Counted from the stretch's first letter, positions 254-52,564 are shown. The stretch is 64,000 bases of DNA from Bugula neritina (GCA_964035545.1 OZ037769.1:930001-994000), one strand, 5' to 3'. The notes: generated by a model not told the origin, from the sequence alone. Program-made: numbers and translations.

Positions 254-801
254 CTGTTGTAAGGAAATTCAAAGAAAATCCAATCATGTTGCTGAGAGTA
301 GAAACTGACAATACAGACTGTTCTTGAGTGAACTTCTGTATTATACCAGGTTCTGTAGTGCCAACACAGTATATTGTACCATTTATCTCTATCTCTGGAC
401 AGGGAGAGCTTCCTGCAGCTGTATCAATATATGGTATACTGATATAACTACCAGCAGGTGCTCTCAGAGTTAGACTACATAAAACAGGTGCTTCCTTTAT
501 CTCTCTATGTTCTATTATCCATGCATATCCTCTATCAACTGTCACTGTATTATTATCACATATATTCACTGGTTTAATATCTTGTCCTTCTATCAATATT
601 ATGATGTAACCACTCAGTAGCAGCAGGAGTTGTCTTCTGACTGACTGAAACAAGAACGTTTAATATTAGTGTATATACACTTCTAAATTTTGTACAGAAA
701 AACTGAATCAAATACTATAATGCATGGTTCCCTTTTGCACTGTTGATCCTGCTAACTGCGAGTAATATCAATATAATGTACATACACTGTGTACTTACCA
801 T
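254..801 (-). CDS. Receptor paralog R5, 5' part only: ATG micro-exon 799-801 and exon 2 at 254-644 (signal peptide plus CUB-like domain 1); continues past the window start
   Basis: ATG|GTAAGT at 801-793, acceptor TTTCAG before 644, giving M-SVRRQLLLLLSGYIIILIEG/QDIKP...; phase-1 donor at 253; homologous to exon 2 of the four complete copies. Confidence 0.85.
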
Positions 802-1983
802 TGTATTGAAGATACTCTGTAAGTAGATAGTTTATGTACAAGCTGTGATGTGTACACCTAGTGTAGTATCTTATACACAGTATAGACTTATATATTCCCA
901 ATAATACTAGTCAGGGAGTAAAGTATAGTCTATTATCACAAGTCAAATACTTCAGTATATATAATTGTGAAATATAGATATACATCTTTGTAGAAAGATA
1001 AATAATGTTATCACAATGAATGCTTTATCTTAAGGAATGTATTCATTTATAATAAATAATATGATATAAACCACTTGACTCGATAATCATTCATTTTACT
1101 TATGCAAATAGTTATCATAAAGTGCATTATCAAAGCCTGATATACTTCACACACAGTGTAGATATACTAGTAATGAATAACTACAATAAATTCTAATTAA
1201 CCACTCTAACAACATATATTGTATATATTACTATTGTTTCATGATTACATCCAGTATTCAGCTAGTCATGTGGACAGGAAGTAAACAAAGTACCCAGAAT
1301 GCACTGCAACAGAGCTACTGAGTAAGAGAAATCTCTGGGAGTTTCTATGTCTTTAAACATAATATGTTGTGTTACTAGAAGTTACTTCAGCTTGTTAACA
1401 ATGGATAATAAACAGCTAGATGTTTATTTAAGTATAACTCATAGTAGAGATGAGAGATTGTGTTGTTCACAAAGTATACAATACATGAATAATTATAATA
1501 AATATATTTATATTGAACAGTTGAATGACCAATACTAAAAATAAAATATATATATCAATGCAGAAACAGCTAGTGTATAAATTTATTGATAGCATTAATC
1601 TAATAATAAATAGTAAATGATATATATATATATATATAGAGCAGTAAGAGTTTCTGTAAAGTATGCTATCTATAATCATGTAACTTAGATATCACCTTAA
1701 ATAAAAAGAAGAAGCAGAAGACCCTTTAATGATTTCCAGCAATTTATAGCTTTAAATTACTTGCAGCTAGAAATAGCTAAGTGAGTGTTTTACAAATTAA
1801 AACAGCAAGTTGTAAAAATTTATTACATGCTGTTGAAAATTATACTCATAGCAATGCTAAGAAAAAAGACATTGCTTGCTAAAAATCAAACAAAACTGTG
1901 TTCAATTATTATAAAAAATTCTTGTTTAAAATTGTTGTGAATAAAACTGTCAACCATTACAAAACCTGAATATATTTTATATG

Positions 1984-4900
1984 CTAAATATTTTCATAAG
2001 CTGATGATTCTACTTGCAGCTTTTCATATGTTGATGCAGGAGCTCCGTTGTCTTGTAACTTTTCATAAAGAGAGCTCTCATTGTTTACAGGGTTGCCATT
2101 GGTTACTGAGGTTGGCGTGTCCATTTCCTCATAGTTATGAGTAGCTGAGTTCACTCTGGGAGAGAGTTGAGTAGACATGGGTTCCTCATACACATCAGGT
2201 ACAGAAGATGGGTGGGTTGTACAGGGCAAACTATCTCTTTTCAAGTAGAGTATTATAATACTGATTGTAATCACAGCTACAGGTACTGCTATGATCAGAG
2301 CAATGAGACCTCCTGGAAACGAAATGTTCGCGTGGTAAATAGAATTGAAATTTTTGAATATATATATTCAATCACTAAACCCGAAACTTAAGTTAATGTT
2401 AAGTCTACATAAACATGTAATTCTGGATAAACACATCACTTGCTATATTCTGCAGACAACCACAGATCTCTAATGAGAGAGTATATATAAAATATTCTGT
2501 AAACAGCCACTGAACTCTAGTGAGAGAGTATGTAATATATTCTGTAAACAGCCACAGAACTCTAATGACAGAGTATGTAATATATTCTGTAGACAGCCAC
2601 TAAACTCTAATGAGAGAGTATATATAATATATTCTGTAGACAGCCACTAAACTCTAATGAGAGAGTATATATAATATATTCTGTAGACAACCACTGAACT
2701 CTAATGAGAGAGTATATAATATATTCTGTAGACAGCCACTAAACTCTAGTGACAGAGTATGTAATATATTCTGTAGACAACCACAGAACTCTAATGACAG
2801 AGTATATAATATATTCTGTAGACAGCCACTGATCTCTAATGACAGAGTATATAATATATATAATATATAGACAGCCACTGAACTCTAGTGAGAGAGTATA
2901 TAATATATAATAGAAGAAGCATAAACTCACCACTTAGTGGCACATTCTCTTCATCTCTGGTAGTAGAATGAGTCATATGCTCAGATACAACACAACCAGG
3001 GTCATGTGACCAGTTACCAGGCTCTGTACAGACAGGATTTGTAGTCTTAGTATAACCATCATCACATGAGTAGAGTAGATTATCTCCTCTGTAATATCTG
3101 TCTAGTGTGATGGTACCATTAGCTAGGGTTAGTGCTGCTGGGTCACACTCAGCTGTTAGGAAATGACAAAGCCTGTTGAGGTAATTTTACATATGAAAAC
3201 GTAACAACTCAGCTGTTATAAAATGATCTATATTATATATATAGAAAACACAACGTAAGCTGAATCAGAATGATGAAAAGACAAATGAGAAATTCAGTTG
3301 AGATAATTTTACATATGAAAACATAATAACAAGCTACATTATAGGAATATTCTATTATATGCTGATAATTGAAAGTCACAAATAATTACCTGTTTGTGTA
3401 CATTCTGGAACACTGGACCAAGTTTTATCACGTTGACACTGAATCGCATCCATGTTTGTTTTCTTGTAACCATAGTAACAGTCATATGATAGAACTTCTT
3501 GGTAGACATATGTGAGAGTTGCCTCTCCTTTAGATGTGATATTGGTAGTGGAAACATTGATGGAGAGATCAGTGATGTCACACTCAACTGAAGTTATTAT
3601 TAAAAAGCAAACTTGCAGATGGCAATGAAATAATGTGCAAAAGTAATTTAAGTTGTCATCATTAGAATTAAGTATATTAAATTTAAAGTATGTAGTTTTG
3701 GCTATAAAGATAGTATGCAATATAATTATATACAATGTCTACACTTTACAGTATATTGTAACTATATACATATACCTGGTGTACATGTTAGAGATATACT
3801 ACTCCATATCCATGATATATTATTATTATATACATATACCTGGTATACATGTTAGAGATATATTACTCCATATCCATGGTATATTATCTGTATCAGTAGA
3901 ACTACATCTAGATACAACTTCTTCTATTCCATTTCTACTCTCATATCCTTTTATACACTCATATACTGTTGTATGAGTATCAGTCTTAGTTTTATTAGTA
4001 AACTCAACATCTCTTGGCTCTTCTGTACAGTAGGGGACTGGAAAAAACATTTAGAGGTATTATATTAAGTTAATAAAGACATTTTATATATAATATTTTT
4101 ATTACACTGCTTTATAATATTGTGAATACATTATACCTGGAATACATCTTATCTCTGATTGGTTGACCCACTTAGCCTCTGTACCATCTACTTTACATTC
4201 AGAAGTTGAATTATACTTCAACTGATGGTCAGTATCTTCACAAGAGTAGTTTATTATTGTACCAGGAAACCAGGGAGATTCAGTAGATGGAGTACTTGTC
4301 ACATCATCTATTTCAGGTTTATCTCCACATGTCAGTACTGTAAAAGTAAAGAGAAAGGTAGCTGGCATATGGCAGACACAGGGAGAAAGTCTAATACATT
4401 TCTGAAAATACTTTTAATTGTAGTTCTCATAATCTAATTGTGACAGTGAATGCATTATAATGTAATTATGTATTGATGCTTATAAACTGATTTATGTGTT
4501 TATATGTTTTTTAAAAAGAAAATTTCCTATTGGTTTGATCAGTCTAATGGTTATATTTATTGCTCTAATTCTGTGCACTGCTCACTCACCTGTAAACTGA
4601 ATCATAAAGAATACAGACTCTACATCTCCATTGACAGAATCTCCCTCATTTTCATATCTCACAGAGAGTTGGTTGTTTGTAGAGGTTATGTTATGTAGAT
4701 ATCCATCTGGGAAGTTAGCAAACTCCTGATTATCAATAAACCAGGAAGTTCTGGATGATTCTGTAAGCTCAGTAATATCAAAGCTAACATAGTGAGTTTC
4801 ACTTGGTAGGTTTGATATTGTAAACTCACAGGATGATAATGACTGTTTATTAGTTGTATAAGAGCTGGTGAATATTCCAGTCAACTGTTCAACTTGAGGT

Positions 4901-5714
4901 CTGTCTGGTATCTGAAGATTTTCACCACAGAATGTCACTGTAAAAGACATAGCAAAACTTTACTTCAATGTGTAACATATTTTAAAGATATTTGCTCTAC
5001 AGTGTTGAGTGAACCTTATTAAATGGGTTGCTTCTCAATAAACACTGTATAACTGATTACTAACAACACAATAACATATCACAACTACTCATTCATACAG
5101 GCAAGTTAATCATTCAAACTATTTGTTAGCTGCAATATAGATATTAGTTTTCTGAACTTTGAAAAGATTTACAAGTTTTTTACATTAGAATTACTTATAT
5201 AGATTCAAAGTGCATCCCTTTACCTGTTGTAAAGAATTCCAAGTTGAATCCTGTCGTGTTGCTGAGAGTAGAAACTAATAATACAGACTGTTCTTGAGTG
5301 AACTTCTGTATTATACCAGGTCTTGTAGAGTCAATACAGTATGTTGTACCATCTACCTGTATCTCTGGACAGATAGCACCTTCTTCAGAAGCTGCCTTAA
5401 CTCCTGGTATACTGAGATAACTACCAGCAGGTGCTCTCAGAGTTAGACTACATCTAACAGGTGCTCCCTCTATCTCTCTATGTTCTATTATCCCTGCATA
5501 TCCTCTATCAACTGTCACTGTATTATTATCACATATATTCACTGGTTTAATATCTTGTCCTTCTATTAACATGACTGTGTAGATACTCAGCAGTATGAGT
5601 TGCAGAGGGAAGAACTAAAATATAATTAAATTAAATAATGAAAACTGTAGATTGTAAGATTATGTAATAGATATTATCTCATGCATGTGTTTGTATAAAT
5701 ATTCTACTCACCAT
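1984..5714 (-). CDS. Receptor paralog R4: SP-CUB-like x2-sushi x4-TM-Tyr-motif tail (type A tail), 629 aa
   Basis: Exons 5712-5714, 5224-5614, 4590-4937, 4137-4337, 3840-4037, 3390-3587, 2931-3152, 1984-2312, all GT-AG, total 1890 nt in frame; sushi C..C..GY..C..W..C patterns; TM GLIALIIAVPVAVITISIIILYL-KR; tail YEEP, YEEM, YEKL, YEKL, YENI. Confidence 0.88.
2440..2905. repeat. ~42-44 bp minisatellite in the last intron of R4
   Basis: About 10-11 copies of CTCTAATGAGAGAGTATATAATATATTCTGTAGACAGCCACTGAA; only ~2 copies in the paralogous R2 intron (13610-13690). Confidence 0.9.
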
Positions 5715-7202
5715 TTTTTGGACTGATTTAACCTCAGTTTCAATTCAAATATGGTTTCTAAGAAGTTACATTTACTATACATGTATCTGTATTGTACAAG
5801 ACATGCACTGTGTGCTGCAGTTAGTCTGTAACTACACTTATCAACTCAGCTAATGAATAAAAAGAGTTTATATTTTAACTTCCTCCTAGTACGTATTGTA
5901 TTATTCACTCAGCACTCTATGAGCACATTGAATATGATCATTAGATAAGCAAACATGTATATCTATAGATAGTAACCAACTTCCCTATTATGTACACTAT
6001 GTTGAGTATTCTATACTATATAATGCACTAGTTATATGAGGTTATTTATTTTTCTTAGTTATTTGAACAAAGAATTATTACCATGTATTGCTGTACAATC
6101 ACATTGAAAACTGATTACCACATCTAGTATTTAACTTTATACTCACAATCTTGCTCACTGTTAGCAGTTCAGTTTCCTGTAAGAAAACTCTTATCAATTT
6201 TGTTTTTCTTGTTGGGTGCAAATACAAATTCCAAAATCACAGAAGAAATATTTTGCTTTCAAAACCAAAATATGCTTCAATATTACATCAGCATACATCT
6301 AATGGTAATTCATAAGTATTTGGAGAATAAAATAGTTGAAAAAACTGAACGATACACACACTGTTGTCAGTTATTGTACAGCTAATCGTATATGATGCCA
6401 GTTCATTTACTGCAAAAAATTATGGCAATGCTTATAATACAGGGGTTGAGATGCGTAGCTATGGAGTTAATGTAAGAGATTAATATTCTGTGATAGATTG
6501 TAGTTATTGTAATATATAATCATGAGTTGTATTATAGCATTGTAGCTATACAAGCTTTTAGAGAAAAAGCTATGAAAAGCTTTCAGCTAAATAACTATAA
6601 TGCTTGATGTATATAATGTTTCCACTCTCTCTGACATACTATCCAACTAATTAACATACACACATTATACATACATATATTTATCATAGTTCCGCAGCTA
6701 CTATTGCAGGGTATCAATTGATATAGAAATTGTTTTTATAAATTTGGAAAGATTAAATATGATGGTTTAAACAGACTTTATAACTAGGTATATAATGCAC
6801 AATTACTGCAGTATAAAAGAAAAGAATAATTTTTAAAAACTGTCACAGTGCAAAATACAACATAATAATAAATTTGTTATTAAATTTCAGAGTATGTGTG
6901 CAAAAAAAATAAAACAGTGGTCAGTAAATGGTTTGTTCTGGCAAGTGATAAAATTCTAATATTCAGTAATGTGAGTTTTAGTAGTGCAAAAGATAAATAA
7001 TTCAAACTGAAATATAACTTTACAAAACTGAGTTGTGAAGACCAATTCACATGGTATCAGCAATAATTGGTAAAAGTATTAGACACTCAATACAAACATG
7101 TGAAAGTTTTCAGTTACAAAAGACGGTAGAATCAGAAATCAAGTTTGCGTGAGCAAGCAATTACCGTATAATACTGTGTTTACTGTAATATATATAGTAT
7201 AG

Positions 7203-10200
7203 TCAAATGACTGGTGATGTCATTTCCTGTCTGTTCTCATAAAGAGGAAGTGTTGTGTTCAGTTGAAGTTGTTCATATGCTGATGATGGAGAGGTGGTGA
7301 GCTGCTCGTAAGTGTTGGTGGGAGGATTTGCTGAGTTTGAGGGTTGAGTAGACATAGGTTCTTCATATACTTCATGTTTATCAGATAGGGTGTTTCTACA
7401 GGGCAGACTACTTCTTTTCAAATAGAGAATAATACTTCCCAGTGTGATCACTGCTAGTACCAGAACTACCACCACTCCAATCAAACCATCTAAATAAAAT
7501 CCATATAATTCATAAAATCAAAAACAAAACAAAGAAATTTTTTATCTAGGCTTCCCTAGGTAAGTAGAGTGGGAAACCCTGTTAAAGCTCTAACGCATGA
7601 GACAATAAAGAATATTCCGCAAAAAGTTTCAACCACCAAGTGACTAAAATCGATTAACTCTGATTATCTAAATTCTGATGAAACCCTCCACCATTATTGT
7701 AAATAGGTAAGGCTTTTTTGGCTGCAGTTTGATATTCTTGATTTGCTCCAATCATCTGTCAGTTTGATCTCCAGACTCAGTTTAACTGAGTTAGTAGGTG
7801 ACACTTCCTAACCAGTTGTTTAAATTATTGAGTACTTTTTTTGCATATATATAACTGAATAATGCAGGTCTAATGACAGTTTAATAGTATTACTTACCCC
7901 TTTGAGATTTAGGGTATAGTTGACTGTTTCCTGTGACATCAGTAGATTCACCATTTTTCACCAACAAGCAACAAGGGTCATGTGACCAGTTACCAGACTT
8001 TGTACAGACAGTATCTGTAGTCTTAGTATAACCATCATTACATGAGTAAAGTAGATTATCTCCTCTGTAATATCTGCCTGTCTGTATGTCTCCATTAGTT
8101 AGAGTTACTAATAAAGGGCTACACTCAGCTGTAAGAATAACCACATACATTGTATACTCCTCAAAGCTGTGTTACCATACAACTACAGTTTGATGAATTT
8201 ATATTATAGAAATTAGTCTAAATAATCTTACCAGTCTCAGTACATTCTGGAACACTGGACCAACTACCATCATGCTGACATTGGATAACACTCGGATTTG
8301 TTTTCTTGTAACCATAGTAACAATAATACTGTAGAACTTCTTGGTAGAAATATATGTGAATTGTTCCCCCTTTAGATGTTACATAAGTAGTAGTTGTGTC
8401 GAGAAACCAATCACCAATGTCACATTTCACTGAATAAAAAACACAAAAGATTTCTTGCATTAAGCATTGAAACATTATTCTATATTCATGCATGGTATAT
8501 TATTAATTACGCTATAATATATAATATTACTATATACATATATAAATATATACCTGGTGTACATGTTAGAGATATATTACTCCATATCCATGGTATATTA
8601 TCTGTATCAGTAGAACTACATCTAGATGCAACTTCTTCTATTCCATATCTACTCTCATATCCTTTTATACACTCATATACTGTTGTATGAGTATCAGTCT
8701 TAGTTTTATTAGTAAACTCAACATTTCTTGGTTCTGCTGTGCAGTAGGGGACTAGAAAATACAATTATAAGTATTATATTCATATATTATTAGAGAAAGT
8801 CTATATATAATCCTCATTATACAGGTTTATGATGTTATGAAGACGTACCTGGAATACATCTGATCTCTGATTGGTTGACCCACTTAGCCTCTGTACCATC
8901 TACTTTACATTCAGAAGTTGAGTTATACTTCAACTGATAGTCAGTATCTTCACAAGAATAGTTTATTATTGTACCAGGAAACCAGGGAGATTCAATAGAT
9001 GGAGTACTTGTCACATGATCTATTTCAGGTTTATCTCCGCATGCTAGAACTGCCAAAGAAAACAAAAGTAAGCTCATATGTGGTAGAAACAGGGAGAAAG
9101 TCTAAGATATTTCTGAAAATAGTTTTAATTGTAGTTTCACAATCTAATTTTAGCAGTGAATGCATTATAATATAATATAATAATTATGTTATAAACTCTT
9201 ATATGTATAAATTTCTCACTCACCTGTAAACGTAATCATAAAGAATACTGAGTCTACATCTCCAAATAGAGGATCTGGTTCTTGTTCATATCTCACAGAG
9301 AGTTGGTTGTTTGTAGAGGTTATGTCATGTAGATATCCACCAGAGAAGTTAGCAAACTCCTGATTATCAATAAACCAAGAGATTCTGGATGATTCTGTAA
9401 ACTCTGTAATCATATCAAATCTAACATAGTGAGCTTCACTTGATAGGTTTGATATTGTAAACTCACAGAATGATAATGACTGTTTATTAGTTGTATAAGA
9501 GCTGGTGAATATTCCAGTCAACTGTTCAACTTGAGGTCTGTCTGGTATCTGAATATCTTCACCACAGGATGTTACTGTAAAACCACAGCAAATGGCATAT
9601 AATATTTTACACAATACAAATAATTGTTATATTTTTGTAGATCTCTTTTCACAGCAATATTTTAGTAGAAAGTGAATTAAGAAAAATCCAGTCTCACAAC
9701 TCAGCTGATCATAGTAAACTTAAGATGACATGTCGTAAACACTTACTAAAGTTTAGTGGGGTAACCTTATTTATAAACTAATATACATGGAACCTGCTAA
9801 CAACATATATCTTAACTACTTGTTTGCACAGGCAAGCTGCAAAATGCTATCTCAAGATTATCACTAACCTCAATGCAATTGGAATACTATACTCTAGCTA
9901 TTGGTGTTTGAAATTTCTCTAAGATGAAGAGATACATTCACATATACAGGATATATTATGAATTCAGTAATTTTTACGTGGTAGTTTACCTGTTGTATAC
10001 AAGAGTATTATAGATATTTACCTGTTGTAAAGAACTCTAAATTAAATCCTGCCATGTTGCTGAGAGTAGAAGCTGAAAATACAGACTGTTCTTGAGTGAA
10101 CTTCTGTATTATACCAGGTTCTGTAAAATCAATACAGTATGTTGTACCATCTATCTGTATCTCTGGACAGATAGCACCTTCTTCAGCTGCCTTAACTCCT

Positions 10201-10561
10201 GGTACACTGATATAACTACCAGCAGGTGCTCTCAGAGTTAGACTACATGTAACAGGTGCTCCCTTTATCTCTCTATGTTCTATTATCCCTGCATATCCTC
10301 TATCAACTGTCACTGTATTATTATCACATATATTCACTGGTTTAATATCTTGTCCTTTTATCAATATGATAATATAACCACTCAGTAGCAGTAGGAGTTG
10401 TCTTCTGACTGACTGAAACAAAAACAGCTAATATTAGTATATATATACTCCTAAATTTTGTACAGTAAAGCTCAACCAAACTCTATGCATGGTCCCCTTT
10501 ATGCACTGCTGATCCTGCCAACTAATATTATTATAATATACATACACTGTGTACTTACCAT
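7203..10561 (-). CDS. Receptor paralog R3 (type B tail), 619 aa
   Basis: Exons 10559-10561, 10022-10412, 9224-9574, 8849-9049, 8554-8751, 8232-8429, 7898-8128, 7203-7489 (1860 nt); TM GLIGVVVVLVLAVITLGSIILYL-KR; tail YEEP, YEQL-x7-YEQL, YENR. Confidence 0.88.
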
Positions 10562-10999
10562 TGTATTGAAGGTACTCTGTAAGTAGATAGTTTATGTACA
10601 TCTATAAGTGTTGTATCTTATACACAGTATAGACTTATATATTCCCAATAATACTAGTCAGGGAGAAAAGTATAGTCTATTATCACAAGTCAAATACTTC
10701 AGTATATATACTTGTGATTTATATTTATACTTCCTTGTAGAAAGATAAATAATGTTATCACAATGAATGCTTTATCACAATGAATGTATTCATTTAAAAT
10801 ATTATAATATAAACCATTTGACTCTAATCATTCATTCTACTTATGCAAGTAGTTATCATAAAATGCATTATTAAAGCCTTATATACTTCACACATATAGG
10901 TATACTAGTAATGAATAACTACAATAAATTCTAATTAACTTTTTTAACAACACATATAATATATATTACTACTGTTTTATGATTACATACAGTATTCAG

Positions 11000-12500
11000 A
11001 GGAAGTAAAGAAGCAACTAGAGAAAATGAAGAATGGTAAGGCGGCTGGACCCGATGAACTCCCGATGGAGATAGTGAAGAAGCTTGGAGACCTTGGCCTT
11101 GACTGGATTACAGCGGTACTAAGGGAGGTGCAGGATGCAGGTGAACCAGAAGAATGGAGGAGAAGCAAAATAACACCAATTTACAAACAGAAAGGGGACC
11201 CCTTGGACTGCGGTAATTACAGAGGGATCAAACTGTTGAGCCACTGTCTCAAGCTATGGGAGAGGGTAGTGGAGAATAGGATTAGAGGCTTGGTAAAAAT
11301 ATCGGACAGGCAATATGGATTCCAACCCGGAAAGTCAACAGTACAACCAATGTTCTGCCTCGGGATGTTACAGGAGAAGATGAGAGAATATCAAACAGAC
11401 CTCCACATGGTATTCGTTGATCTTGAAAAAGCGTACGACACAGTGCCACGAGACCTCATATGGTACTGTTTAAAAAAAAAAGTGTACCAGAGCAGTATGT
11501 AAGGATTATCCGGGATATGTACAAGAACTGCACTACATCAGTTACAACCAGCGAAGGAGCAACAGAAGAGATAGACATCGAAGTGGGGTTGCACCAGGGA
11601 TCTGCGTTGATTCCTTTCCTGTTCATAGTCATATTGGATGTAATCTCAGAAAAAATAGACGAGAAAACACCGTGGGCAATGCTCTTTGCAGATGACCTAG
11701 TTATCTGCGATAAAGAGGAAGAAAGGGTAGAAAAGAGATTAGAGGCATGGCGTGGACATCTAGAGGACGCAGGTCTCAAGGTGAGCCGGAAGAAAACAGC
11801 GCATCTTCCACCAAGGGAAAGCACCACCAGGATCAGAATGAAAAGATACGACCAGGAGGACTACACTGAGCTACCAACAACAAATAAGTTCAAGTATCTG
11901 GGGACAGTGATAGATCAGGATGGAGGCTGTGAGGCTGAAGTCACAAGAAGAATAAGTGCAGCGTGGGATAGATGGAGGGACCTATCAGGAGTTATGTGTG
12001 ACAAAAAAGTGCCTAAACAACTAAAGGTAGTACTCTACAAAACAATCATAAAACCAACACTGATATATGGCAATGAAACATGGCCCATCACCCAGAGGCA
12101 AGAGCAAAGGATAGAGGCAACCGAAATGCGAATGCTCAGACACATATATAGAATAAACTGGGAGGATCATGTTAGGAATGAAGACATAAGAAGCGAAGCT
12201 AAGGTTAAACCTGTGTCTAGGTATATGAGGAAGAGAAGACTTCAGTGGTATGGTCATGTGCAGAGGAGAGATAGTGAAGAGGATATTAAATATGTGGCTG
12301 AGTTGAAAATAGTGGGGAAGAGAAAGAGAGGACGACCCAAACAAAGATGGATGGACACGGTAGGAGATGACATGAAGCGATGGGATCTTAAACCGGAGGA
12401 GGCAGAAGACCGGGAAAGATGGCAGACGCTGATAGAGATTGGAAACCTGCAGACCGGTCACCCGTACAGGACTACGACCGTATAGGTGTGAAAGGTGTGA
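11000..12500 (+). mobile_element. 5'-truncated RTE-clade LINE (reverse transcriptase, one frameshift)
   Basis: ORFs 11026-11502 and 11460-12485 with GNYRGIKLL, QYGF, FVDLEKAYD, GLHQG, LFADD, FKYLG, RRLQWYGHV and RGRP; frameshift in the A-run at ~11472-11481; ATTCAG target duplication at 10994-10999 and 12501-12506; GGTGTGA(AA) repeat tail; empty site visible at ~1255-1275. Confidence 0.95.
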
Positions 12501-13214
12501 ATTCAGTTAGTAATTTGGACAGGAAGTAAACAAGGTACCCAGAATGCACTGCAACAGAACAACTGAGTAAGAGAAATCTCCGAGAGTTTCTAATATATTT
12601 AAACATACTATGTTGTGTTACTAGAAGTTACTTCAGCTTGTTAACAATGGATAATAAACAGCTAGATGTTTGTTTAAGTATAACTCATAGTATAGATGAG
12701 AGAGTATTATATTGTTTACAAAGTATATATTACATGAATAAGGGTAATAAATATAATATGTCTATATTAAACAGTTAGATGACCAATAATATAAATAGAA
12801 TATATATCAATGCAGGAACACTTAGTGTATAAATTTACTAATAACATTATAATATAATGGTAAATGATATATAGAGCAGTAAGAGTTTCTGTAAAGTATG
12901 CTATCTATCATGTAACTTAGACATCACCCTAAATGAAGAAGCAGAAGACCCTTTAATGATTTCCAGTAATTTATAGCTTTAAGTTACTTGCAGCTGTGAC
13001 CTAGAAATAGCTCAGGGAATGCTTTACAAATCAAAACAGCAAGTTGTAAAAATTTATTGCAGTTATAGAATTATACTCATAGAAATGCTAAGAGAAAAAA
13101 TATTGTTTGCTAAAGAGTAAACAAAATTGTGTTCAATTATAATTAAATATTTTTGTTTAAAATTGCTGTGAATAAAGATGTCAGGCACTATCTTGTCTGC
13201 ATGTATTTTACATG

Positions 13215-16200
13215 CTAAATATTTTCATAAGCTGATGATTCTACTTGCAGCTTTTCATATGTTGGTGCAGGAGCTCCGTTGTTTTGTAACTTTTCATAAA
13301 GAGAGCTCTCATTGTTTACAGAGTTGCCATTGGTTACTGAGGTAGACGTGTCCATTTCCTCATAGTTATGAGTAGCTGAGTTCACTCTCGAAGAGAGTTG
13401 GGTAGACATGGGTTCCTCGTACACATCAGGTACAAAAGGTGGGTGGGTTGTACAGGGCAAGCTATCTCTTTTCAAGTAGAGTATTATAATACTGATTGTA
13501 ATTACAGCTACAGGTACTGCTATGATCAGAGCAATGAGACCTCCTGGAAAGAAGTTAATGTTAAGTCTACGTAAACATGTGTAAATTCAACAGATTTATA
13601 TTCACAGTGGACAGCCACTGAACTCTGGTGAGAGAGTATGTAATATATTCTGTAGACAGCCACTATAAACTCTAATGAGAGAGTATATATAGATAAATTA
13701 AAAAAACAAGAACTCACCATTGAGTGGCACATTCTCTTCATATCTGGTAGTAGAATGAGTTATATTCTCAGATACAACACAACCAGGGTCATGTGACCAG
13801 TTACCAGACTCTGTGCAGACAGGATCTGTAGTCTTAGTATAACCATCATCACATGAATAGAGTAGATTATCTCCTCCAAAATATCTGTCTAGTGTGATGG
13901 TACCATTAGCTAGGGTTAGTGCTGCTGGGTCACACTCAGCTGTTAGAAAATATGTTATATATTTAGAAAAGACGACACAAGTTGAATCGGAATGATGAAA
14001 AGACAAATGACAAAGTCTGTTGAGGTTATTTACATATGACAACATAATAATAAGCTAAATTATAGAAATATTCTATTACATGCTAATTATTGAAAGTCAC
14101 AAACAATAACCTGTTAGTGTACATTCTGGAATACTGGACCAAGTTTTATCATGTTGACACTGAATCACATCCATGTTTGTTTTCTTGTAACCATAGTAAC
14201 AGTCATATGATAGAGCTTCTTGGTAGACATATGTGTGAGTTGTCCTTCCTTTAGATGTGATGTTAGTAGTGGAAACATTGATGGAGAGATCAATGATGTC
14301 ACACTCAACTAAAGTTATTAATAAAGGGTTATACTAGCAGATATCAATGAGCAGTTTATTCAAATTAAGAGAGGTTATACTTGTTACTATTATAATTTAG
14401 TATATTAAAATAAGATTATAGCAGCTATAAAGATAGCATGAATATAACAAGTATACAGCATTTACAGTATATTATTACTATGTCCTACATATACCTGGTG
14501 TACATGTTAGAGATATATTACTCCATATCCATGGTATATTATCTGTATCAGTAGAACTACATCTAGATACAACTTCTTCTATTCCATCTCTACTCTCATA
14601 TCCTTTTATACACTCGTATACTGTTGTATGAGTACCAGTCTTAGTTTTATTAGTAAACTCAACATCTCTCGGCTCTTCTGTACAGTAGGGAACTAGAAAA
14701 TGCGATTAGAAGTATGATTTTTAATTATTAGAAAAAGTTCATATATAATCTTTCATATATAGCGTTATGTGTTGGAGACATACCTGGAATACATCTGATC
14801 TCTGATTGGTTGATCCACTTAGCCTCTGTACCATCTACTTTACATTCAGAAGTTGAGTTATATTTCAACTGATAGTCAGTATCTTCACAAGAATAGTTTA
14901 TTATTGTACCAGGAAACCAGGGAGATTCAGTAGATGGAGTACTTGTCAAATGATCTATTTCAGGTTTATCTCCACATGTCAGTACTGTAAAAGTAAAGAG
15001 AAAGGTAGCTGGCATATGGCAGACACAGGGAGAAAGTCTAAGACATTTCTGAAAAAACTTTTAATTGCAGTTTTCATAATCTAATTTTGGCAGTGAACGA
15101 ATTATAACGTAAGTATGTATTGATGCTTATAAACTCATTTACGTGTTCATATGTTTTTTAAAAAGAAAATTTCCTGTTGTTTTGATCAGTCTAATGATTA
15201 TATTTAATGATCTAATTTTGTGCATCTCTCACTCACCGGTAAACTGAATCATAAAGAATACTTCATCTACATCTCCAGATACAGGATCTCCCTCATTTTC
15301 ATATCTCACAGAGAGTTGGTTGTTTGTAGAGGTTATGTCATGTAGATATTCATTAGGGAAGTTAGCAAACTCCTGATTATCAATAAACCAGGAGGTTCTG
15401 GATGATTCTCTAATCTCAGTAATAATATCAAACGTAACATAGTGAGCTTCACTTGGTAGGTTTGATATTGTAAACTCACAGGATGATAATGAATATTTAA
15501 TAGTTGTATAAGAGCTGGTGAATATTCCAGTCAACTGTTCAACTTGAGGTCTGTCTGGTATCTGAATATCTTCATCACAAGATATTACTGTAATGATAAT
15601 CAACAGAGTAAAACAAATTATTTTGCAAATTTCAATTATTTAATTGTACCGAATTTTTATAGATTTTGTTGATTAATTTATCACCTATAGTTTTATAATG
15701 AATAGGCTGAAATTGAAACCAATAATAACGTTTCAAGTTAATTTCTTCACACCGTTGGGAACTTTTAAGCCATCCATTAGACTGTGCAGTGCAGCAGCTA
15801 ACAATAGCATGCAATGAATGTTAGCTACAATTAGTATAAGTTTTATAGTAGCGGTAAAGTCAAAGCCACCTGAAAATTTTATTTTCAGCCGATCAGAAAT
15901 CCCAAATCATTTCAGTACATACTTGCACAAAATTCTTTATAAAACAAAATTGTATAGGCATTCAACCTTAAAACATTATGTAGATGAAAACTAATATATA
16001 TAAGAAAATTTTAGTACTGCATAAGTGAAGTGTGCCAGGAATTCTTTAAAAAATAAATAATAAATAGGCCAATATATAGACCAATCTATTTTTATTTGTA
16101 AAGTGCTAAATCTTCACTCAAAATAAATAGTGTAGTAGTTTTGTGGGTAGAATGAAATTTAGTGGGGAGCCTAACTTCAGTATAGAAGAAACAAGGTGAA

Positions 16201-17128
16201 GTGGTAATCTTGAATGAAATAATCTTTATTGCAGTAAAAGTAGTGTATAAAATTAGGTCTGTACCCTGCGAGCTCCATGCAGTGATAGACAATGCTAAAA
16301 ATTGGGCTTTCCGGCAGAGGTTGGCCTACATAATTCAAACAATTACCACAAAGAAACTATTCCCTATGCTAAAAGCTTTATCAATAACTACAATATTTAT
16401 AAGGCATTAGAAAGCTACCCATAGCTTAGCTATAATTGGAGGCATTCCAAAGTTACGCCAAGAGCTTAGTTATAATTACAGCATTCAAAAAGATAAGCAA
16501 TAAGTAATTATAATGCTGAAGCACATAGTTACTAAAACTTTCCAAAACATAGTAGTGACAACTCTCAAAATCCATTACAATAGTTTACAGTTGAAACTTT
16601 TTAATAGACGAGAGTAATACATGGTTACCTGTTGTAAAGAACTCCAGGTTAAATCCAGACATGTTGCTGAGAGTAGAAACTGATAATACAGACTGTTCTT
16701 GAATGAACTTCTGTATTATACCAGGTCTTGTAGAGTCAATACAGTATATTAATGTACCATCTATCTGTATCTCTATCTGTATCTCTGGACAGATAGCACC
16801 TTCAGGAGCTGCATAAACTCCTTGTATACTAATATAACTACCAGCAGGTGCTCTCAGAGTTAGACTACATCTAACAGGTGCTCCCTCTATCTCTCTATGT
16901 TCTATTATCCCTGCATATCCTCCATCAACTGTCACTGTATTATTATCGCATATATTCACTGGTTTAATATCTTGTCCTTTTATCAATATGACTGTGTAGA
17001 TACTCAGTAGTAGGAGTTGCAGAGGGAAGAACTAAAATAATTATATTAAATAATAAAAACTGTAGATTGTAAGATTATATATTTATAGATACTATCTCAT
17101 GTGTTTGTATATAAGTTTTACTCACCAT
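13215..17128 (-). CDS. Receptor paralog R2 (type A tail), 634 aa
   Basis: Exons 17126-17128, 16629-17031, 15237-15587, 14784-14984, 14495-14692, 14111-14308, 13718-13939, 13215-13543 (1905 nt, open frame). Confidence 0.88.
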
Positions 17129-18622
17129 TCTTAGACTGATTTAATCCCAATTTCAATTCAAATATGGTTTCTAAGAAGTTACATTTACCCTACATGTATC
17201 TGTATATTGTACAAGACGTGCACTGTGTGCTGCAGCTAGTCTGTAACTAAACTATCAACTTAGCTAATGATTAGAAGGAGTTTATATTTTAACTTCCTCA
17301 TAGTACCTATAATGTGTTATTTACTCAGCACCCTATGAGCACATTGAATATGATCATTAGATAAGCAAACATGTATATCTATAGATAATAACCAACTTCC
17401 CTATTATATACACTATGTTGAGTATTCTATACTATATAATGCACTAGTTATATGAGGTTATCTATTTTCCTTAGTCATTTGAACAAAGAACTATTACCAT
17501 GTATTGCTGTACAATCACAGTGAAAACTGATTACCACATCTAGTATCTATCGTTATACTCACAATCTTGCTCACTGTTAGCAGTTCAGTTTCCTGCAAGA
17601 AACTTCTCTTATCAATTTTGTTTTTCTTGTTGGGTGCAAATACAGATTTCAAAATCACAGAAGAAATATTTTGCTTTCAGAACCAAATGCTTCAATAGTA
17701 TATCAACATACATTTAATGCTAATTCATACGTATTTTGAAAATACAATACTTGAGAAAACTGAACAATACACACACTGTTGTCAGTTATTGTACAGCTGA
17801 TCATATGATACCAGTTCATTTTCTGCGAAGAATAAAGGCAATGCTTATAATGCAGGTGTTGAAATGTGTAGCTATGCATGAAGTTAATGTAAGATATTAA
17901 TACTCTGTTATAGATTGTAGTTAAATTGTAATATAATCATGTGTTGTATCATAGCATTGTAGCTATACAAGCTTTTAGAGAAAAAGCTATGAAAAGCTTT
18001 CAGCTAAATAACTAATGCTTGATGTATATAATGTTTCCACTCTCTCTGACATACTACCTACTAGTTAACATACACATATTATGTATATATTTATTATAGT
18101 TCGGCAGCTACTATTGCAGAGTATCAATTGATATAGAAATTGTTTTTATAAATTTGTTATGATAAATGATGATGGTTTAAACAGACTTTATAATTAGGTA
18201 TATAATGCACAATTACTGAAGTATAAAAGAAAAGAATAATTTTTAAAAACTTATATCCACTATTACAGTTCGAAATACAATTACATACTAATAAATTTGT
18301 TATTAAATTTCAGAGTATGTGTGCAAAAAATAAAAAAGCAGTCAATAAAATTGTTTGTTGTGGCAAATGATAAAATTCTAATATTCAGTTATGTGAGTTT
18401 CAGTAATGTAAAAACATAAATAATTCACACTGAAAGATAACTTTACAAAACTGAGTTGTGAAGACCGATTCACATAGTATCAGAAAATTGGTAAAGGTAT
18501 TAGACACTGAATACAAACGTGTAAAAGTTTTCAGTTGAAAAAAGCAGTAAAATCAGAAATAAAGTGTGCATGAGCAAGCAATTATATTACTGCATGTGTT
18601 TACTGTAATGTGTGTAGTATAG

Positions 18623-21486
18623 TCAAATGACTGGTGATGTCATTTCCTGTCTGTTCTCATAAAGAGGAAGTGTTGTGTTCAGTTGAAGTTGTTCATATGC
18701 TGATGATGGAGAGGTGGTGAGCTGCTCGTAAGTGTTGGTGGGAGGATTTGCTGAGTTTGAGGGTCGAGTAGACATAGGTTCTTCATATACTTCATGTTTA
18801 TCAGATGGGGTGTCTCTACAGGGCAGACAACTTCTTTTCAAGTAGAGAATAATACTACCCAGTGTAACCACTGCTAGTACCAGAACTACCACCACTCCAA
18901 TCAAACCATCTAAAACATGTCATGTGATTTGTAAAGCAGAATGTAATATAAAAGAAAGAGCAAATGATTGACAATAAGTAGAGTGGATAAACCTATAAAA
19001 TCCGTGAAACATAAGACAATAGAAAATATTCTACAAAAATAGTTGAACAAAATATACTCAAATTGATTGGCTCTAACTATCTAAATTCTGGTAAATCCCT
19101 CCACTATTATTCTAAATATCAACATAAGGCTGATCAGCTGAAAGTTAAATGTCTTGATTTGACCCAAACAGCTGTCAGCTTCAACTCAGTTAGTAACTGA
19201 CAATGTCTATAAACTGTTTCCATCTATATACAACTTTAAACAGCATCACTTACCTCTTTGTGACTGGAGGGCTAGATAGCTGTTTCTGGTGGCTTCAGTA
19301 GATTTACCATCTTTGACCAACAGACAACCAGGGTCATGTGACCAGTTACCAGACTCTGTACAGACAGGATCTGTAGTCTTAGTATAACCAATATCACATG
19401 AGTAGAGTAGATTATCTCCTCCGTAATATCTGCCTGTCTGTATGTCTCCGTTAGTTAGATTTAGTGCTGTAGGGTCACACTCATCTGTAAGAATAACCAC
19501 ATATATGTATTGTATACTTTTCAAAGCTGTGTTACCATACAACTACAGTTTGATAAATGTATATTATAGACATGAGTCTAAATAATCTTACCAGTCTCAG
19601 TACATTCTGGAACACTGGACCAACTACCATCATACTGACATTGAATAACACTCGGATTTGTTTTCTTGTAACCATAGTAACAATAATACTGTAGAACTTC
19701 TTGGTAGAAATATGTGTGAGTTATTCCTCCTTTAGACGTCACATAAGTAGTTGTTGTGTCGAGAAACAAATCACTAATGTCACATTCCACTGAATAAAAA
19801 ACACAAGAGATTTCTTGTAACATTGAAACATTATCCTATATTCATGGTATATTATTACGCTATACTATATATTATTACTATAACATATATAAATATATAC
19901 CTATTGTACATGTTATAAGAGATAGTATATTATTACTATATACAAGTACCTGGTGTACATGTTAGAAATATATTACTCCATATCCATGGTATATTATCTG
20001 TATCAGTAGAATTACATCTAGATACAACTTCTTCTACTCCATCTCTACTCTCATATCCTTTTATACACTCATATACTGTTGTATGAGTATCAGTCTTGGT
20101 TTTATTAGTAAACTCAACATCTCTTGGCTCTTCTGTACAGTAGGGGACTAGAAAATACAACTAGAAAAATTCTATTCAGGTATTAGATGACGTCTATATA
20201 ATATGGCACTTATAATGCAAGCTTGTGCTATAAATATATACCTGGAATACATCTGATCTCTGATTGCTTGACCCACTTAGCCTCTGTATCATCTACTTTA
20301 CATTCAGAAGTTGAGTTATATTTCAACTGATAGTCAGTATCTTCACAAGAATAGTTTATTATTGTTCCAGGAAACCAGGGAGATTCAGTAGATGGAGTAC
20401 TTGTCACATGATCTATTTCAGGTTTATCTCCACATGTCAGAACTGTAACAAGAGTGACTACATTGTTCAAACCTATACTATTTAAAATATAATGTTAACC
20501 ATTGTGTCGAAATTGAATTATTTACTCACCTGTAAACTGAATCATAAAGAATACTGAATCTACATCATCAGATACAGGATCTGGCTCATTTTCATATTTC
20601 ACAGAGAGTTGGTTGTTTGTAGAGGTTATGTTATGTAGATATCCATCAGGGAAGTTAGCAAACTCCTGATTATCAATAAACCAGGAGGTTCTGGATGATT
20701 CTGTTATAAGCTCAGTAATATCAAACCTAACATAGTGAGCTTCACTTGGTAGGTTTGATATTGTAAACTCACATGATGGTAATGACTGTTTATTAGTTGT
20801 ATAAGAGCTGGTGAATATTCCAGTCAACTGTTCAACTTGAGGTCTGTCTGGTATCTGAATATCTTCACCACAGGATGTCACTGTAACATAAATGTATACA
20901 ATAATTACATGTCGTCTATAGCACAAAAGTTAGGCTTGTTACATAGGTTATCTTTAGCTTCACCTGTTTTATATAAGAATAACATTTATACCTGTTGTAA
21001 AGAATTCCAAGTTGAACCATGTCACATTGCTGAGAGTAGAAACTGATAATACAGACTGTTCTTGAGTGAGCTCCTGTATAATACCTTCAGGTCTTGTAGA
21101 GTCAATACAGTATGTTGTACTATCTATATGTACTTCCGCGCAAAAGTATCCTTCAAAATATTTATAATGAACTCCTGGTATACTGATATAACTACCAGCA
21201 GGTGCTCTCAGAGTTAGACTACATAAAACAGGTGCTCCCTTTATCTCTCTATGTTCTATTATCCCTGCATATCCTCTATCAACTGTCACTGTATTATTAT
21301 CACATATATTCACTGGTTTAATATCTTGTCCTTCTATGAATATGACTGTGTATATACTCAGCAGTATGAGTTGCAGAGGGAAGAACTGAAATATAATTAA
21401 ATTAAATTAAATAATGAAAACTGTAGATTGCAAATTTATATACTAGATACTATCTCATGTGTGTGTAAATAAGTTTTACTCACCAT
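18623..21486 (-). CDS. Receptor paralog R1 (type B tail), 620 aa; first gene of the array
   Basis: Exons 21484-21486, 20992-21385, 20530-20880, 20242-20442, 19950-20147, 19592-19789, 19254-19484, 18623-18909 (1863 nt, open frame). Confidence 0.88.
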
Positions 21487-22402: not shown

Positions 22403-39715
<17,313 letters not shown>

Positions 39716-41044: not shown

Positions 41045-44000
41045 TTAACCAGTCCGTGACCTTCTATGCATCAGATGAGGGTCAAGGACAAAGTTGAGCT
41101 GCAAGTTTTGATTGGCTGAGAAGCTAATCAAGAGGTTTTTAAGCCCTGTTTCTATTTGAGGTTGAAATTTTCTAGGAACGTACCCATCTCGGTAAGACCT
41201 AGCAATGGTGACTAAAGCTATATCTGGTAAAGCTGATATAGAACCTTCTGTCAGAAGTAAGTCCTTGGTAATGCTGCCTTCACTTGGGACATAGAATACA
41301 GATCCTCCAGAATAGGGTGTGCTGGAGCCTGTACACACGGCCATAGAGTTTAGCTGAGTCTCTACAGATATCTTAGCTGTGTAGGGGGACAACTCCATAC
41401 AGAAACCAACAGCTAACAACGCTTTCAGTTGAGGAATTGACAGTTTTTCTCTCACATAAAATTTAAGTTGGTCCAACTTCTCTTTGATTCTGTTTACTTG
41501 AGAGCATTTTGTCTGACTCATAGCAGTGGTCTGCTCTTGGGTCAAGGTTAGGCAGTTGATGTCCAGTGGAGATGTACACTTAGACTGCAGGACACTTGTT
41601 ATCAAATCAAACAAATGTTTCTCCTCATCTGCTGTTCTGGGACAGAAAAGTGGTTCCAGCATCTCATTTACCTTCTCTGAAAACACATTAGTATATTATG
41701 AATCATACTCTGTGATATTTTACTGCAACAATTGTCTTCTTTTACAGACAAGCTATGCTACAAGGATACAAATTGTAAGCTCAACATGCAAAATGCTGGA
41801 AAGGCTCATCAAACACTACATTATAACTCATACACCTATGGACAAATATCAGTTCGCATATCGTACAAATCGCTCTACACAAGATGCGCTGTTATGTCTA
41901 ACTACAACTGTGACAAGTTTCATTGATAAGAAAGCATCCAATTACGCAAGGTGCCTTTTTCTAGACTTCTCTTCTGCATTCAATACTATATCTATTCCAG
42001 ACCTCATTACGCAACTAACTCATCTTGACTCCAATGTTACTGAGTGGATTTACAGATTTCTTACAAACAGAGTGGATGGCATAACATCAAATCCAATCAT
42101 AACTAACACAGGAACTCCCCAAGGGTGCTGTTTATCTCCACTATTGTTTTCTATCTACACTAATAGGATTACCTCAAGCCAGAGCAACATCACCGTAATT
42201 AAATATGCAGATGACACTTGCATTATTGGCTGCATTGGCAAACAGTCTGATCTAAATATTTACTTTGATGAGATTAAAAGAATTTCTAAGCAATGTGATG
42301 ATTTAAATTTATTATTAAACCCTAGCAAGACCCAAGAAATGATGTTCTCAACCCAACGTGCTAAACCTCATACCCCTACTCTCGTATTGAATGGAACAAA
42401 CATTGTATTGTCTGAAAAAGTAAGATATCTTGGTGTGTTAGTGGATCAGAATTTGAGATTTCATGAACATGTACAATCAGTAGTAACAACAGTATCAAGA
42501 AGAATGTATATTGTGAAGAATTTTGCGTATCTTAGCTCTAAACCTCTAGCAAATATGTTATTCAAAAGTTTCATCATGTCCCGCATCGCCTATTGTCTAC
42601 CTACTATTTTTACTTGTATCTATGCCAGTGATAAAAAGGCTATTCGAAGAATTCTCAAAGATTGCTCAAAACTCGGAATTAAGTATCTAAACATTGATTT
42701 GCACATTCAGAAACTCACTAAAGAACTTGCCATCAAATATATAATAGACAATGACCATTTCATCAATAACTTTCTGAGTCAATGCCCTTCTGGAAGATAT
42801 CGAACCATCAAATATAGAGGGGCATGAGGCAGAGATAGCTTCTTGCGACATTTTGTAAATACTTTGAATGATCTTTTATTTCAAATAATCCAACAGAGTT
42901 TTGATTTTTTCTCTTATTTTTGTTCATTCCTACTTATTATAGCCAGTATTTACACTGAATTTTGCAACGTGCTGTCATGTTTGTGATATGTAATAAATCA
43001 ATCAATCAACAGTTCTTGCTTAAAGTATATTTAGAGAAAGGCAAACTGTGTAGTGGTATGAAGATAGAGTGATGTAATATATTGTGACAATCAATAATTT
43101 CATTCTTATTGTATTTACGCTAACAGGAAACACGCATATCAGCATGCTATTTAAATGTTAACATAATATTGTAATGGATTCTCATCCTCTACTGTTCTGA
43201 AGTAACTGCGTGCGTCAGTATTATAATTACTGTTGCGTATGTTTGGAATGCTGTAATTGTAGCTAAGTTGGGCTAGCTTTCTAATGCCTTATTATTGTGA
43301 TTGTTGTTAAAGCTTTTAGTATAATGTAATTTTCATGAAATACGCATTCCAGAGTTATTTTCTCTTTTTGCTATTTGTGTGGCTTTTATGAATGCCTTCA
43401 ATAGGTTGTTATTATAGCTAAATTCTTGGCCTATTGAATTATTCGTTCTCCTTTGTCTACTTTTCTTTTGTTTCTGTCAAGCTTAACTTTTTTTTGTCTG
43501 TTGGAACATTCTAGATTGTGAATTCTTGTGTATAAAAGCAGGCGAGTTTCCAGTGTAGTTCAGACTACTACTGGAGCTCGCTGGTAGTAGGACCTAAAGC
43601 TGTATTGATACAATAAAAGTTATCTTTCATTTGTACTCAAATACTTGGCTTATTCTTTCTAATGAGCATGTAGGCACTAGTTGCATTCATAACCCACAGT
43701 TTACTACAATATTAAAGTTTTAAAGCCAGCTGAAGCCCTTGCTATGTGACCATACCGCAACAACAAACTTATTTTCTCACAAGTAGGCTGTGTGTTTTTC
43801 TCAACTGCTTCTTTTAAGGAGAAATATGTAACCGTATTCACGCTCAAAAGAAAATCTAATACAAAACTAAATCTGCATCTTGGAACTTAAATACACCAAT
43901 AATGCAGCTCTGTTCTAATAAATAATACGTAGATCTGAGAACTGGTGATTAGCTTCATTTGAACAAGACTTTTCAACTAATACAAGATAGCTACATGTTT

Positions 44001-48410: not shown

Positions 48411-52564
<4,154 letters not shown>

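Follow-up and report, generated by a model that had tools for sequence, protein, structure and literature searches.

Among described receptor systems, those that appear closest by design to the locus reported here are the Alr complex of Hydractinia and the vertebrate paired-receptor clusters, and those that appear closest by domain content are SEZ6 and CSMD; to none of these was homology found. The locus is a tandem array of receptor genes in the bryozoan Bugula neritina (GCA_964035545.1), on the minus strand of chromosome 5 (chr5; C5, OZ037769.1). It lies at positions 254-21486 of a 64,000-nucleotide (nt) stretch, 930001-994000 of that chromosome, called the window below. From its sequence, we consider it somewhat probable that the array belongs to a lineage-specific multigene receptor family that signals through tyrosines in its tails, most simply for immune-type recognition.

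The Alr genes, a large and clustered family, encode single-pass type I proteins with diversified ectodomains and divergent tails, many of which carry immunoreceptor tyrosine-based activation or inhibition motifs (ITAMs, ITIMs), in a colonial marine invertebrate whose genome also encodes Syk/Shark and SHP homologs (PMC9546547). The Bugula genes resemble them in each of these respects. However, Alr ectodomains are built of V-set/I-set Ig-like and Fn3-like domains, whereas those of Bugula are of CUB-like and sushi type; Pfam gave no Ig or Fn3 signal in any family exon, there is no sequence homology to Alr, and Bugula and Hydractinia are of different phyla. In addition, the function of Alr1 and Alr2 is genetically proven and their allelic polymorphism is extreme, whereas the Bugula family is known from its genes alone.

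The KIR, LILR, SIRP and Siglec-type receptors of vertebrates likewise occur in tandem clusters, combine near-identical ectodomains with differing signalling tails, follow an ITAM/ITIM logic, and frequently undergo recombination or gene conversion. They differ from the Bugula family in having Ig or lectin ectodomains, and their activating members use a charged transmembrane (TM) residue and an adaptor. In Bugula, the TM segments of the short-tailed members showed no charged residue, and, unlike in the vertebrate receptors, ITAMs and ITIM-like motifs overlap in one tail.

Ciona vCRL1 and Botryllus fester and uncle fester are also type I membrane proteins with sushi (complement control protein, CCP) domains, and have been proposed as variable recognition molecules. 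They are not known to have CUB-like N-terminal domains. These are tunicate genes, and because the phyla differ we consider orthology very unlikely. vCRL1 is cited among highly polymorphic Ciona loci (PMC6916515) and the fester locus is given as being under selection (PMC3549757).

A further group, SEZ6, CSMD, NETO and LEV-10, consists of single-pass type I proteins that have a short tail and combine CUB-type with sushi domains (PMC9083331). These are conserved proteins of neuronal or complement-regulatory function, mostly encoded by single-copy genes, with canonical, Pfam-detectable CUB domains in alternating or other orders, whereas the Bugula family has two CUB-like domains undetected by Pfam, followed by three or four sushi domains, ITAM-bearing tails, and a 22-copy cluster. 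A profile of the second of the CUB-like domains (D2), run against 1.84 billion proteins, matched no SEZ6, CSMD, NETO or LEV-10.

The array in the window is a real and intact tandem array of receptor genes. It comprises four complete genes (copies B-E) and the first two exons of a fifth (copy A), with all coding pieces on the minus strand. Exon boundaries in B-E were set by homology guidance, and the gene models are predicted from the genome sequence; searches, folds and selection analyses were run exon by exon, and frame continuity was judged from exon lengths and intron phases. Each complete copy has 8 exons, in the order ATG-only, signal peptide plus first domain (D1), D2, S1, S2, S3, S4, and TM segment plus tail. 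The first coding exon is the ATG alone, with GT immediately after it, and each of the S1-S4 exons (198-231 nt) encodes one cysteine-rich module, the S4 exon including the stalk as well. All homologous boundaries, both in B-E and in the exons of copy A that fall in the window, are canonical, with acceptor AG and donor GT. The introns after the ATG-only exon are in phase 1 throughout, and because every split codon begins with G, none of these codons can be a stop. The coding lengths are divisible by three: 1890 nt (629 codons) in B, 1860 (619) in C, 1905 (634) in D and 1863 (620) in E. A preliminary description of the window had claimed at least five head-to-tail paralogs, four of them complete with intact eight-exon frames, between 254 and 21486. 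Exon tables, splice sites, phases and lengths all agree with this, and the limits are confirmed at both ends, where exon 1 of copy A ends at 254 and the ATG of copy E lies at 21486.

Direct repeats with a spacing of ~4.4-6.6 kb cover 250-21430, and a second periodicity of ~11.4 kb pairs B with D and C with E. When the B-E units are aligned, the exons are conserved and the introns between them cannot be aligned. Exon divergence between copies is 10-25%, and a frameshifted reverse-transcriptase (RT) fragment of the long interspersed nuclear element (LINE) type lies between C and D (11026-12485, plus strand; RVT_1 on two adjoining open reading frames, or ORFs, E 4e-13 and 1e-12). The divergence of the exons, the non-aligning introns and this fragment together argue that the copies are not an assembly duplication. 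The insertion of the fragment also accounts for the wider spacing of C and D.

All of the copies lie on the minus strand, and the coordinates that follow are those of the window. Copy A occupies 254-801, with the ATG of exon 0 at 799-801 and exon 1 (signal peptide and D1) at 254-644, as read from the splice sites; its remaining exons map to C5:927038-929380, left of the window, and the whole gene spans chr5:927-930.8 kb. Copy B, with a tail of type 1, extends from its ATG at 5714 to 1984 (ATG 5712-5714; D1 5224-5614; D2 4590-4937; S1 4137-4337; S2 3840-4037; S3 3390-3587; S4 2931-3152; TM and tail 1984-2312), has AG/GT sites in phase 1, and carries two overlapping ITAMs and three ITIM-like motifs. 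Its last intron contains a minisatellite (2399-2901) with a 45-47 nt unit in at least 8 copies in register, which does not occur in the matching intron of C, D or E. Copy C, with a type 2 tail and one ITAM (YEQL-x7-YEQL), extends from 10561 to 7203 (ATG 10559-10561; D1 10022-10412; D2 9224-9574; S1 8849-9049; S2 8554-8751; S3 8232-8429; S4 7898-8128; TM and tail 7203-7489). Copy D is again of tail type 1 and extends from 17128 to 13215 (ATG 17126-17128; D1 16629-17031; D2 15237-15587; S1 14784-14984; S2 14495-14692; S3 14111-14308; S4 13718-13939; TM and tail 13215-13543). Copy E, of tail type 2, is the final gene of the array and extends from 21486 to 18623 (ATG 21484-21486; D1 20992-21385; D2 20530-20880; S1 20242-20442; S2 19950-20147; S3 19592-19789; S4 19254-19484; TM and tail 18623-18909). 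Profile searches of the whole genome revealed no more family exons to the right of copy E.

Leftward, the array runs on beyond the window. Searched exon by exon with TBLASTN and profiles, the whole genome yielded 22 D1 exons and 22 D2 exons on chr5, for a family total of 23 genes: 22 on chr5 in three clusters, and one diverged singleton on chr2. Cluster 1 (chr5:588-615 kb, minus strand; C5:588000-615400, L001-L003) holds three genes. Cluster 2 (chr5:677-717 kb, plus strand) holds eight, five of which are divergent, with a D2 identity of 34-46% and a variable number of modules. Cluster 3 (chr5:897-951 kb, minus strand) consists of eleven tandem genes, the last four of which, with the start of a fifth, make up the array in the window. 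The twenty-third member, at C2:28.887-28.892 Mb, is very divergent and yet keeps the order of signal peptide, D1, D2, three sushi-type modules, TM segment and tyrosine-rich tail. Stops within the D1 match were found in 0 of the 22 copies on chr5; one D2 match is broken by two TAA codons, both of which lie in the stretch upstream of the exon. The cluster-1 genes share a third type of TM segment, 'IALIAGGGALVVV...ARCLRHRLVL', past which their three reading frames diverge, suggesting a splice donor at this point and at least one additional tail exon.

Outside this genome, the D2 profile search described above gave 18 matches, most of them brief ORF pieces in assemblies of metagenome or Logan origin; the few long proteins were aligned in short stretches only, and two carry unrelated Pfam families. 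The sole named, full-length match was an uncharacterised protein of Watersipora subatra, XP_067929890.1. This homolog (XP_067929890.1 / XP_067929889.1) has a signal peptide, D1, D2, three sushi-type modules, a TM segment and a tail, and matches the family in D1 with a BLASTP E of 5e-8 and in D2 with an hhalign probability of 97%. It differs from the Bugula proteins in its long tail, of ~170 residues, which carries PPxY-like motifs and lacks an ITAM. A homolog search with region 28-255 of the Watersipora protein returned only the protein itself. In the literature that we searched, such a receptor family is not described for bryozoans, and the paper on the draft B. neritina genome reports weak similarities to Alr1 only (PMC7576161). 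The earlier statement that no described family fits this architecture therefore stands, given also that the one named match is uncharacterised, and the family has been seen so far in bryozoans only, to judge from these searches.

Over the five divergent genes of cluster 2, contigs from other Bugula samples are colinear with the reference and 80-86% identical to it, in introns as well. The ortholog exons from this other Bugula lineage gave a nonsynonymous divergence (dN) of 0.056, a synonymous divergence (dS) of 0.279, and a ratio (omega) of 0.20, which shows the predicted family genes to be real and constrained. In the metagenome and Logan contigs with family exons (L034-L041), identity to the reference is 80-91% across introns and exons alike; because of this level of identity and the dS of 0.28, we regard them not as alleles but as coming from a divergent lineage within the B. 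neritina complex, which contains documented cryptic species (PMC10078279). One of them, a 946-nt contig from a Bugula-associated metagenome (L034; JGI 3300002729), encodes a D2 and S1 of the array type and has near-equal best matches to several copies, at 87-91.5%. One-to-one orthology thus appears to have been lost in the tandem array, whereas the divergent cluster-2 genes have retained clear one-to-one counterparts. A codon-degenerate pattern of a neighbouring ORF, scanned against metagenome contigs as a baseline, gave no match.

Variation among the paralogs is concentrated unevenly. In close paralogs S1 and S2 are ~90% identical, and D1, S3 and S4 are more variable. Within D1, the alignment and an entropy peak delimit a hypervariable loop at residues 46-58 ('PGV-xxAxEGx-IC'), which in copy E corresponds to 21140-21178 on the minus strand (numbered within window:20993-21313:-). 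The loop is sharply bounded and is distinct in every paralog listed; it follows a conserved 'SYISIPG' strand, precedes the third cysteine, and adjoins an indel built of an EIQI repeat. By motif register, it would fall at the 'LE...C.YD' ligand- or Ca-binding loop of a canonical CUB domain. Among paralogs, the dN of the loop (0.35-0.54) is comparable to its dS (0.22-0.44), and positive selection is therefore not demonstrated there.

The two halves of the genes have different histories. On exon trees of D1, D2, S1 and S2, tail type is scrambled, requiring 7 changes on each, whereas it follows the trees of S3 and S4, with 4 and 3 changes, respectively, and deep splits in both. The genes are therefore mosaics, in which, as the trees would have it, the C-terminal halves are older and distinct, and the N-terminal halves attached to them have been homogenised across the three clusters.

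The tails are 55-85 residues long. We searched them with the ITAM pattern Yxx[IL]x6-9Yxx[LI] and the ITIM pattern [I/L/V/S]xYxx[I/V/L], following published definitions (PMC9546547). Type 1 tails, found in B, D and two upstream genes, have five tyrosines, arranged in the overlapping ITAMs YEKL-x9-YEKL and YEKL-x6-YENI, together with two or three ITIM-like motifs and YEEM. Type 2 tails, found in C, E and others, have four, with the ITAM YEQL-x7-YEQL, one ITIM-like motif and YENR; the 4-5 tyrosine motifs per tail noted in the preliminary description are borne out by these counts. An ITAM is present in all four type 1 tails and in seven of the eight full-length type 2 tails, one gene having lost it through a Y-to-C change. 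Two upstream genes have a truncated type 2 tail with no ITAM, and they are also missing S3. In composition-preserving shuffles, as many ITAMs as observed arose in ~0.4% of type 2 trials and in <=0.02% of type 1 trials. The ITIM-like motifs SLYEKL, STYEKL, SAYENI and SAYEQL overlap the ITAM tyrosines, and those of type 2 are no rarer than chance (shuffles ~0.12). Candidate partners for such motifs are encoded elsewhere in the genome: a locus at C7:14371513-14377601 has the SH2-SH2-tyrosine kinase architecture of Syk/Shark, and one at C3:23740128-23748502 has the SH2-SH2-protein tyrosine phosphatase architecture of SHP.

From the structure, copy number, domain order, motifs, constraint and candidate partners set out above, we infer ligand binding, tail phosphorylation and an immune role for the family. 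The predicted product is a type I receptor with a cleavable signal peptide, two CUB-like domains (the first with the hypervariable loop), three or four sushi/CCP domains, a short stalk, a TM segment and a tail. Its CUB-like domains, the part of the ectodomain farthest from the membrane, would bind an extracellular ligand of microbial or cellular origin. The tail tyrosines, lying in ITAM- or ITIM-like contexts, would become phosphorylated and be read by the tandem-SH2 Syk-like kinase and the tandem-SH2 SHP-like phosphatase of this genome. In such an immune-type receptor set, near-identical N-terminal halves would be presented on differing C-terminal halves (two ITAMs in type 1, one in type 2, none in the truncated tails, and other tails elsewhere in the family), and the mosaic would be kept up by recombination or gene conversion.

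A number of results weigh against this interpretation, and those from the ectodomain bear on the identity of D1 and D2. Pfam assigned neither CUB (PF00431) nor any other family, at E<=10, to D1 or D2 of copy E, of the divergent paralogs, of Watersipora or of the metagenomic relatives. AlphaFold (AF2) models built from the paralog alignments are all-beta and of moderate confidence (pLDDT 73 for D1 and 65 for D2), and the structural Z-scores that they gave are all below 8, in a range that common beta-sandwich arrangements also reach. In the tails, conservation does not extend between genera, the Watersipora tail being free of ITAMs; the cluster-1 and divergent genes have other tails, some of them short and tyrosine-free; and the YxxL/I motifs match the generic YxxPhi endocytic sorting signal equally well. 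Lastly, dN/dS between paralogs is 0.3-0.8 per exon, with no clear signal of positive selection, a range that suggests relaxed or diversifying evolution.

With respect to D1 and D2, some other comparisons point towards a CUB-like fold and others do not. Profile searches of PDB sequences with two family alignments were empty, and Foldseek found nothing in the PDB under E 1e-3 for the D1 model. VIA-align placed a bacterial carbohydrate-binding module first for D1 (Z 6.5) and CUB2 of TMPRSS6 second (Z 5.9). For D2, the top 50 rows of VIA-align included at least 11 CUB entries at Z 5.0-6.0, each aligned over the whole domain; these were from TMPRSS6, Kremen, Gpr126, enteropeptidase, NRP2, C1s, MAP-1, TSG-6, cubilin, spermadhesin and MASP-1. 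In an ESM-Atlas feature search the nearest clusters were dominated by PF00431 (0.94 for D1 and 0.90 for D2), whereas the shape search returned generic bacterial jelly-roll domains only. Hhalign comparison with alignments of this genome's own CUB half-domain exons gave weak matches in canonical register (D1, E 0.004; D2, E 1e-4 with a probability of 54%), and these did not improve when more distant relatives were added. The aligned core in D1 is 'CSLTLRAPAGSYISI'. D1 has four nearly invariant cysteines (C4, C31, C58 and C69) in a CUB-like arrangement, and D2 has only the first CUB cysteine pair. We read D1 and D2 as CUB-like sandwiches that have diverged strongly; the resemblance is one of fold and is weakly supported, and formal PF00431 membership is not established.

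The sushi assignment is firmer. Against Pfam Sushi (PF00084, cut-off 20.7 bits), S3 scored 34.2 bits (E 3e-8) and S4 26.0 bits (E 1e-5), and by these scores both modules are classified as sushi/CCP. S1 of two divergent paralogs matched over the full model length at 18.2-18.7 bits (E 2-4e-3), under the cut-off; S1 of the chr2 gene, at 15.7 bits, was also below it. S2 had no match to the Sushi hidden Markov model and shows the C-C-C-W-C spacing only. The sushi-type Cys and Trp columns are conserved in the module alignments; hhalign of S1 and S2 against S3 and S4 was uninformative, the alignments being of very low diversity. Of the layout claimed previously (signal peptide, two CUB-like and four sushi domains, TM segment, and a tail free of enzymatic domains), the order as such is upheld, and Pfam supports sushi in S3 and S4, falls short of its threshold in S1, leaves S2 to its cysteine pattern, and does not support CUB.

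The chief alternative to an immune role, which we judge unlikely, is that these are non-immune surface receptors: endocytic or scavenger receptors, adhesion proteins, or synaptic organisers of the SEZ6, CSMD, NETO and LEV-10 kind. Proteins with CUB, CCP and TM segments are typical of such functions (PMC9083331), the tail tyrosines would then be YxxPhi sorting signals, to which YEKL, YEQL and YENI all conform, and part of the family has no ITAM. However, a 22-gene tandem expansion with a hypervariable loop and mosaic tails would be unusual for synaptic organisers, the ITAM spacing is conserved and occurs above composition-based chance, and the D2 profile detected no homology to SEZ6, CSMD or NETO. 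We can all but set aside the idea that the copies are decaying pseudogenes or an assembly artefact, for which the retroelement within the array might be cited: frames are open and all splice sites present in 4 of 4 complete copies, D1 stops number 0 of 22, ortholog omega is 0.20, and the copies differ in sequence and intron length.

Two narrower proposals would specify what is recognised. It is doubtful, in our estimate, that the family is a self/non-self determinant acting in larval kin recognition, in the rejection of self or related sperm, or in allorecognition, with the D1 loop as the specificity site. It is just as doubtful that chr5 590-951 kb constitutes a bryozoan complex for kin, mate or allogeneic recognition, in which the CUB-like loop would set specificity and ITAM versus ITAM-less tails the response. 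A clustered, diversified family with ITAM/ITIM tails is the design of the Alr complex (PMC9546547), D1 holds a discrete hypervariable loop, B. neritina is colonial, and the literature searched gives no molecular allorecognition system for Bryozoa; furthermore, a kin bias in larval settlement was reported for one cryptic lineage of B. neritina, and inbreeding is described as very rare (PMC10078279). That bias was not reproduced in other populations, however, and fusion between colonies reportedly does not occur in B. neritina (PMC10078279), which removes the classical fusion/rejection phenotype. Moreover, the variation that we measured is among paralogs and not allelic, and the five divergent cluster-2 genes are 1:1 with those of the other lineage and under purifying selection (omega 0.20). 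The preliminary description had proposed a self/non-self receptor family; in its general, immune-type form the proposal remains plausible, whereas an allorecognition locus is unsupported, given that omega and the reported absence of fusion. As a special case of immune recognition, the receptors might serve to recognise or tolerate 'Candidatus Endobugula sertula', a vertically transmitted bacterium of B. neritina, or other associates. The host does have this specific larval symbiont and variable bacterial associates (PMC5041132), and receptors of this design would be suited to recognising microbial surfaces, but the family is present in Watersipora too, and we give this possibility little credence.

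No immune or recognition receptor family has been described for Bryozoa in the literature searched, and the 23 genes offer a testable entry point, with a defined architecture, a discrete hypervariable loop, tails with and without ITAMs, and Syk-like and SHP-like proteins as identifiable partners. If the ITAM reading is true, the family would be a lophotrochozoan, non-Ig case of a recurring arrangement, that of clustered, recombining receptors coupled to ITAM/ITIM signalling, and a pair of highly divergent CUB-like domains would serve as its variable recognition module. If the self/non-self reading were true, a histocompatibility-type receptor cluster would have arisen independently on a non-Ig scaffold, and in a phylum from which no such molecule is known.

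The rest of the window and the assembly yielded several minor observations. At 35733-36032 (minus strand), a 99-codon ORF scored 22.6 bits against PAN_1, barely over the cut-off of 21.4, and adjoins a long (CA/TG)n microsatellite at 35377-35770. A Cys-rich ORF at 51078-51377 had no Pfam match at E<=0.01. A long, regular tandem repeat at 32340-33767, with a unit of 16 amino acids (~48 nt), is open on both strands (475 and 446 codons) and looks like a satellite rather than a gene. Two retroelement ORFs lie on the plus strand: one at 38123-39193 has a weak RVT_1 match and a C-terminal part resembling a GIY-YIG endonuclease (Penelope-like, by eye), and one at 41526-42827 has a clear RVT_1 match (E 2e-30). 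Finally, dozens of small scaffolds among the unplaced contigs (for example C176:33222-33977, C33:18549-19265 and C66:415702-416457) carry full-length, apparently intron-less protein-kinase matches. Each match is interrupted by 5-18 in-frame stops, which are TAA or TAG and hardly ever TGA, as fits not bryozoan genes but a cobiont whose code is ciliate-like and reassigned and whose sequence remained in the assembly.

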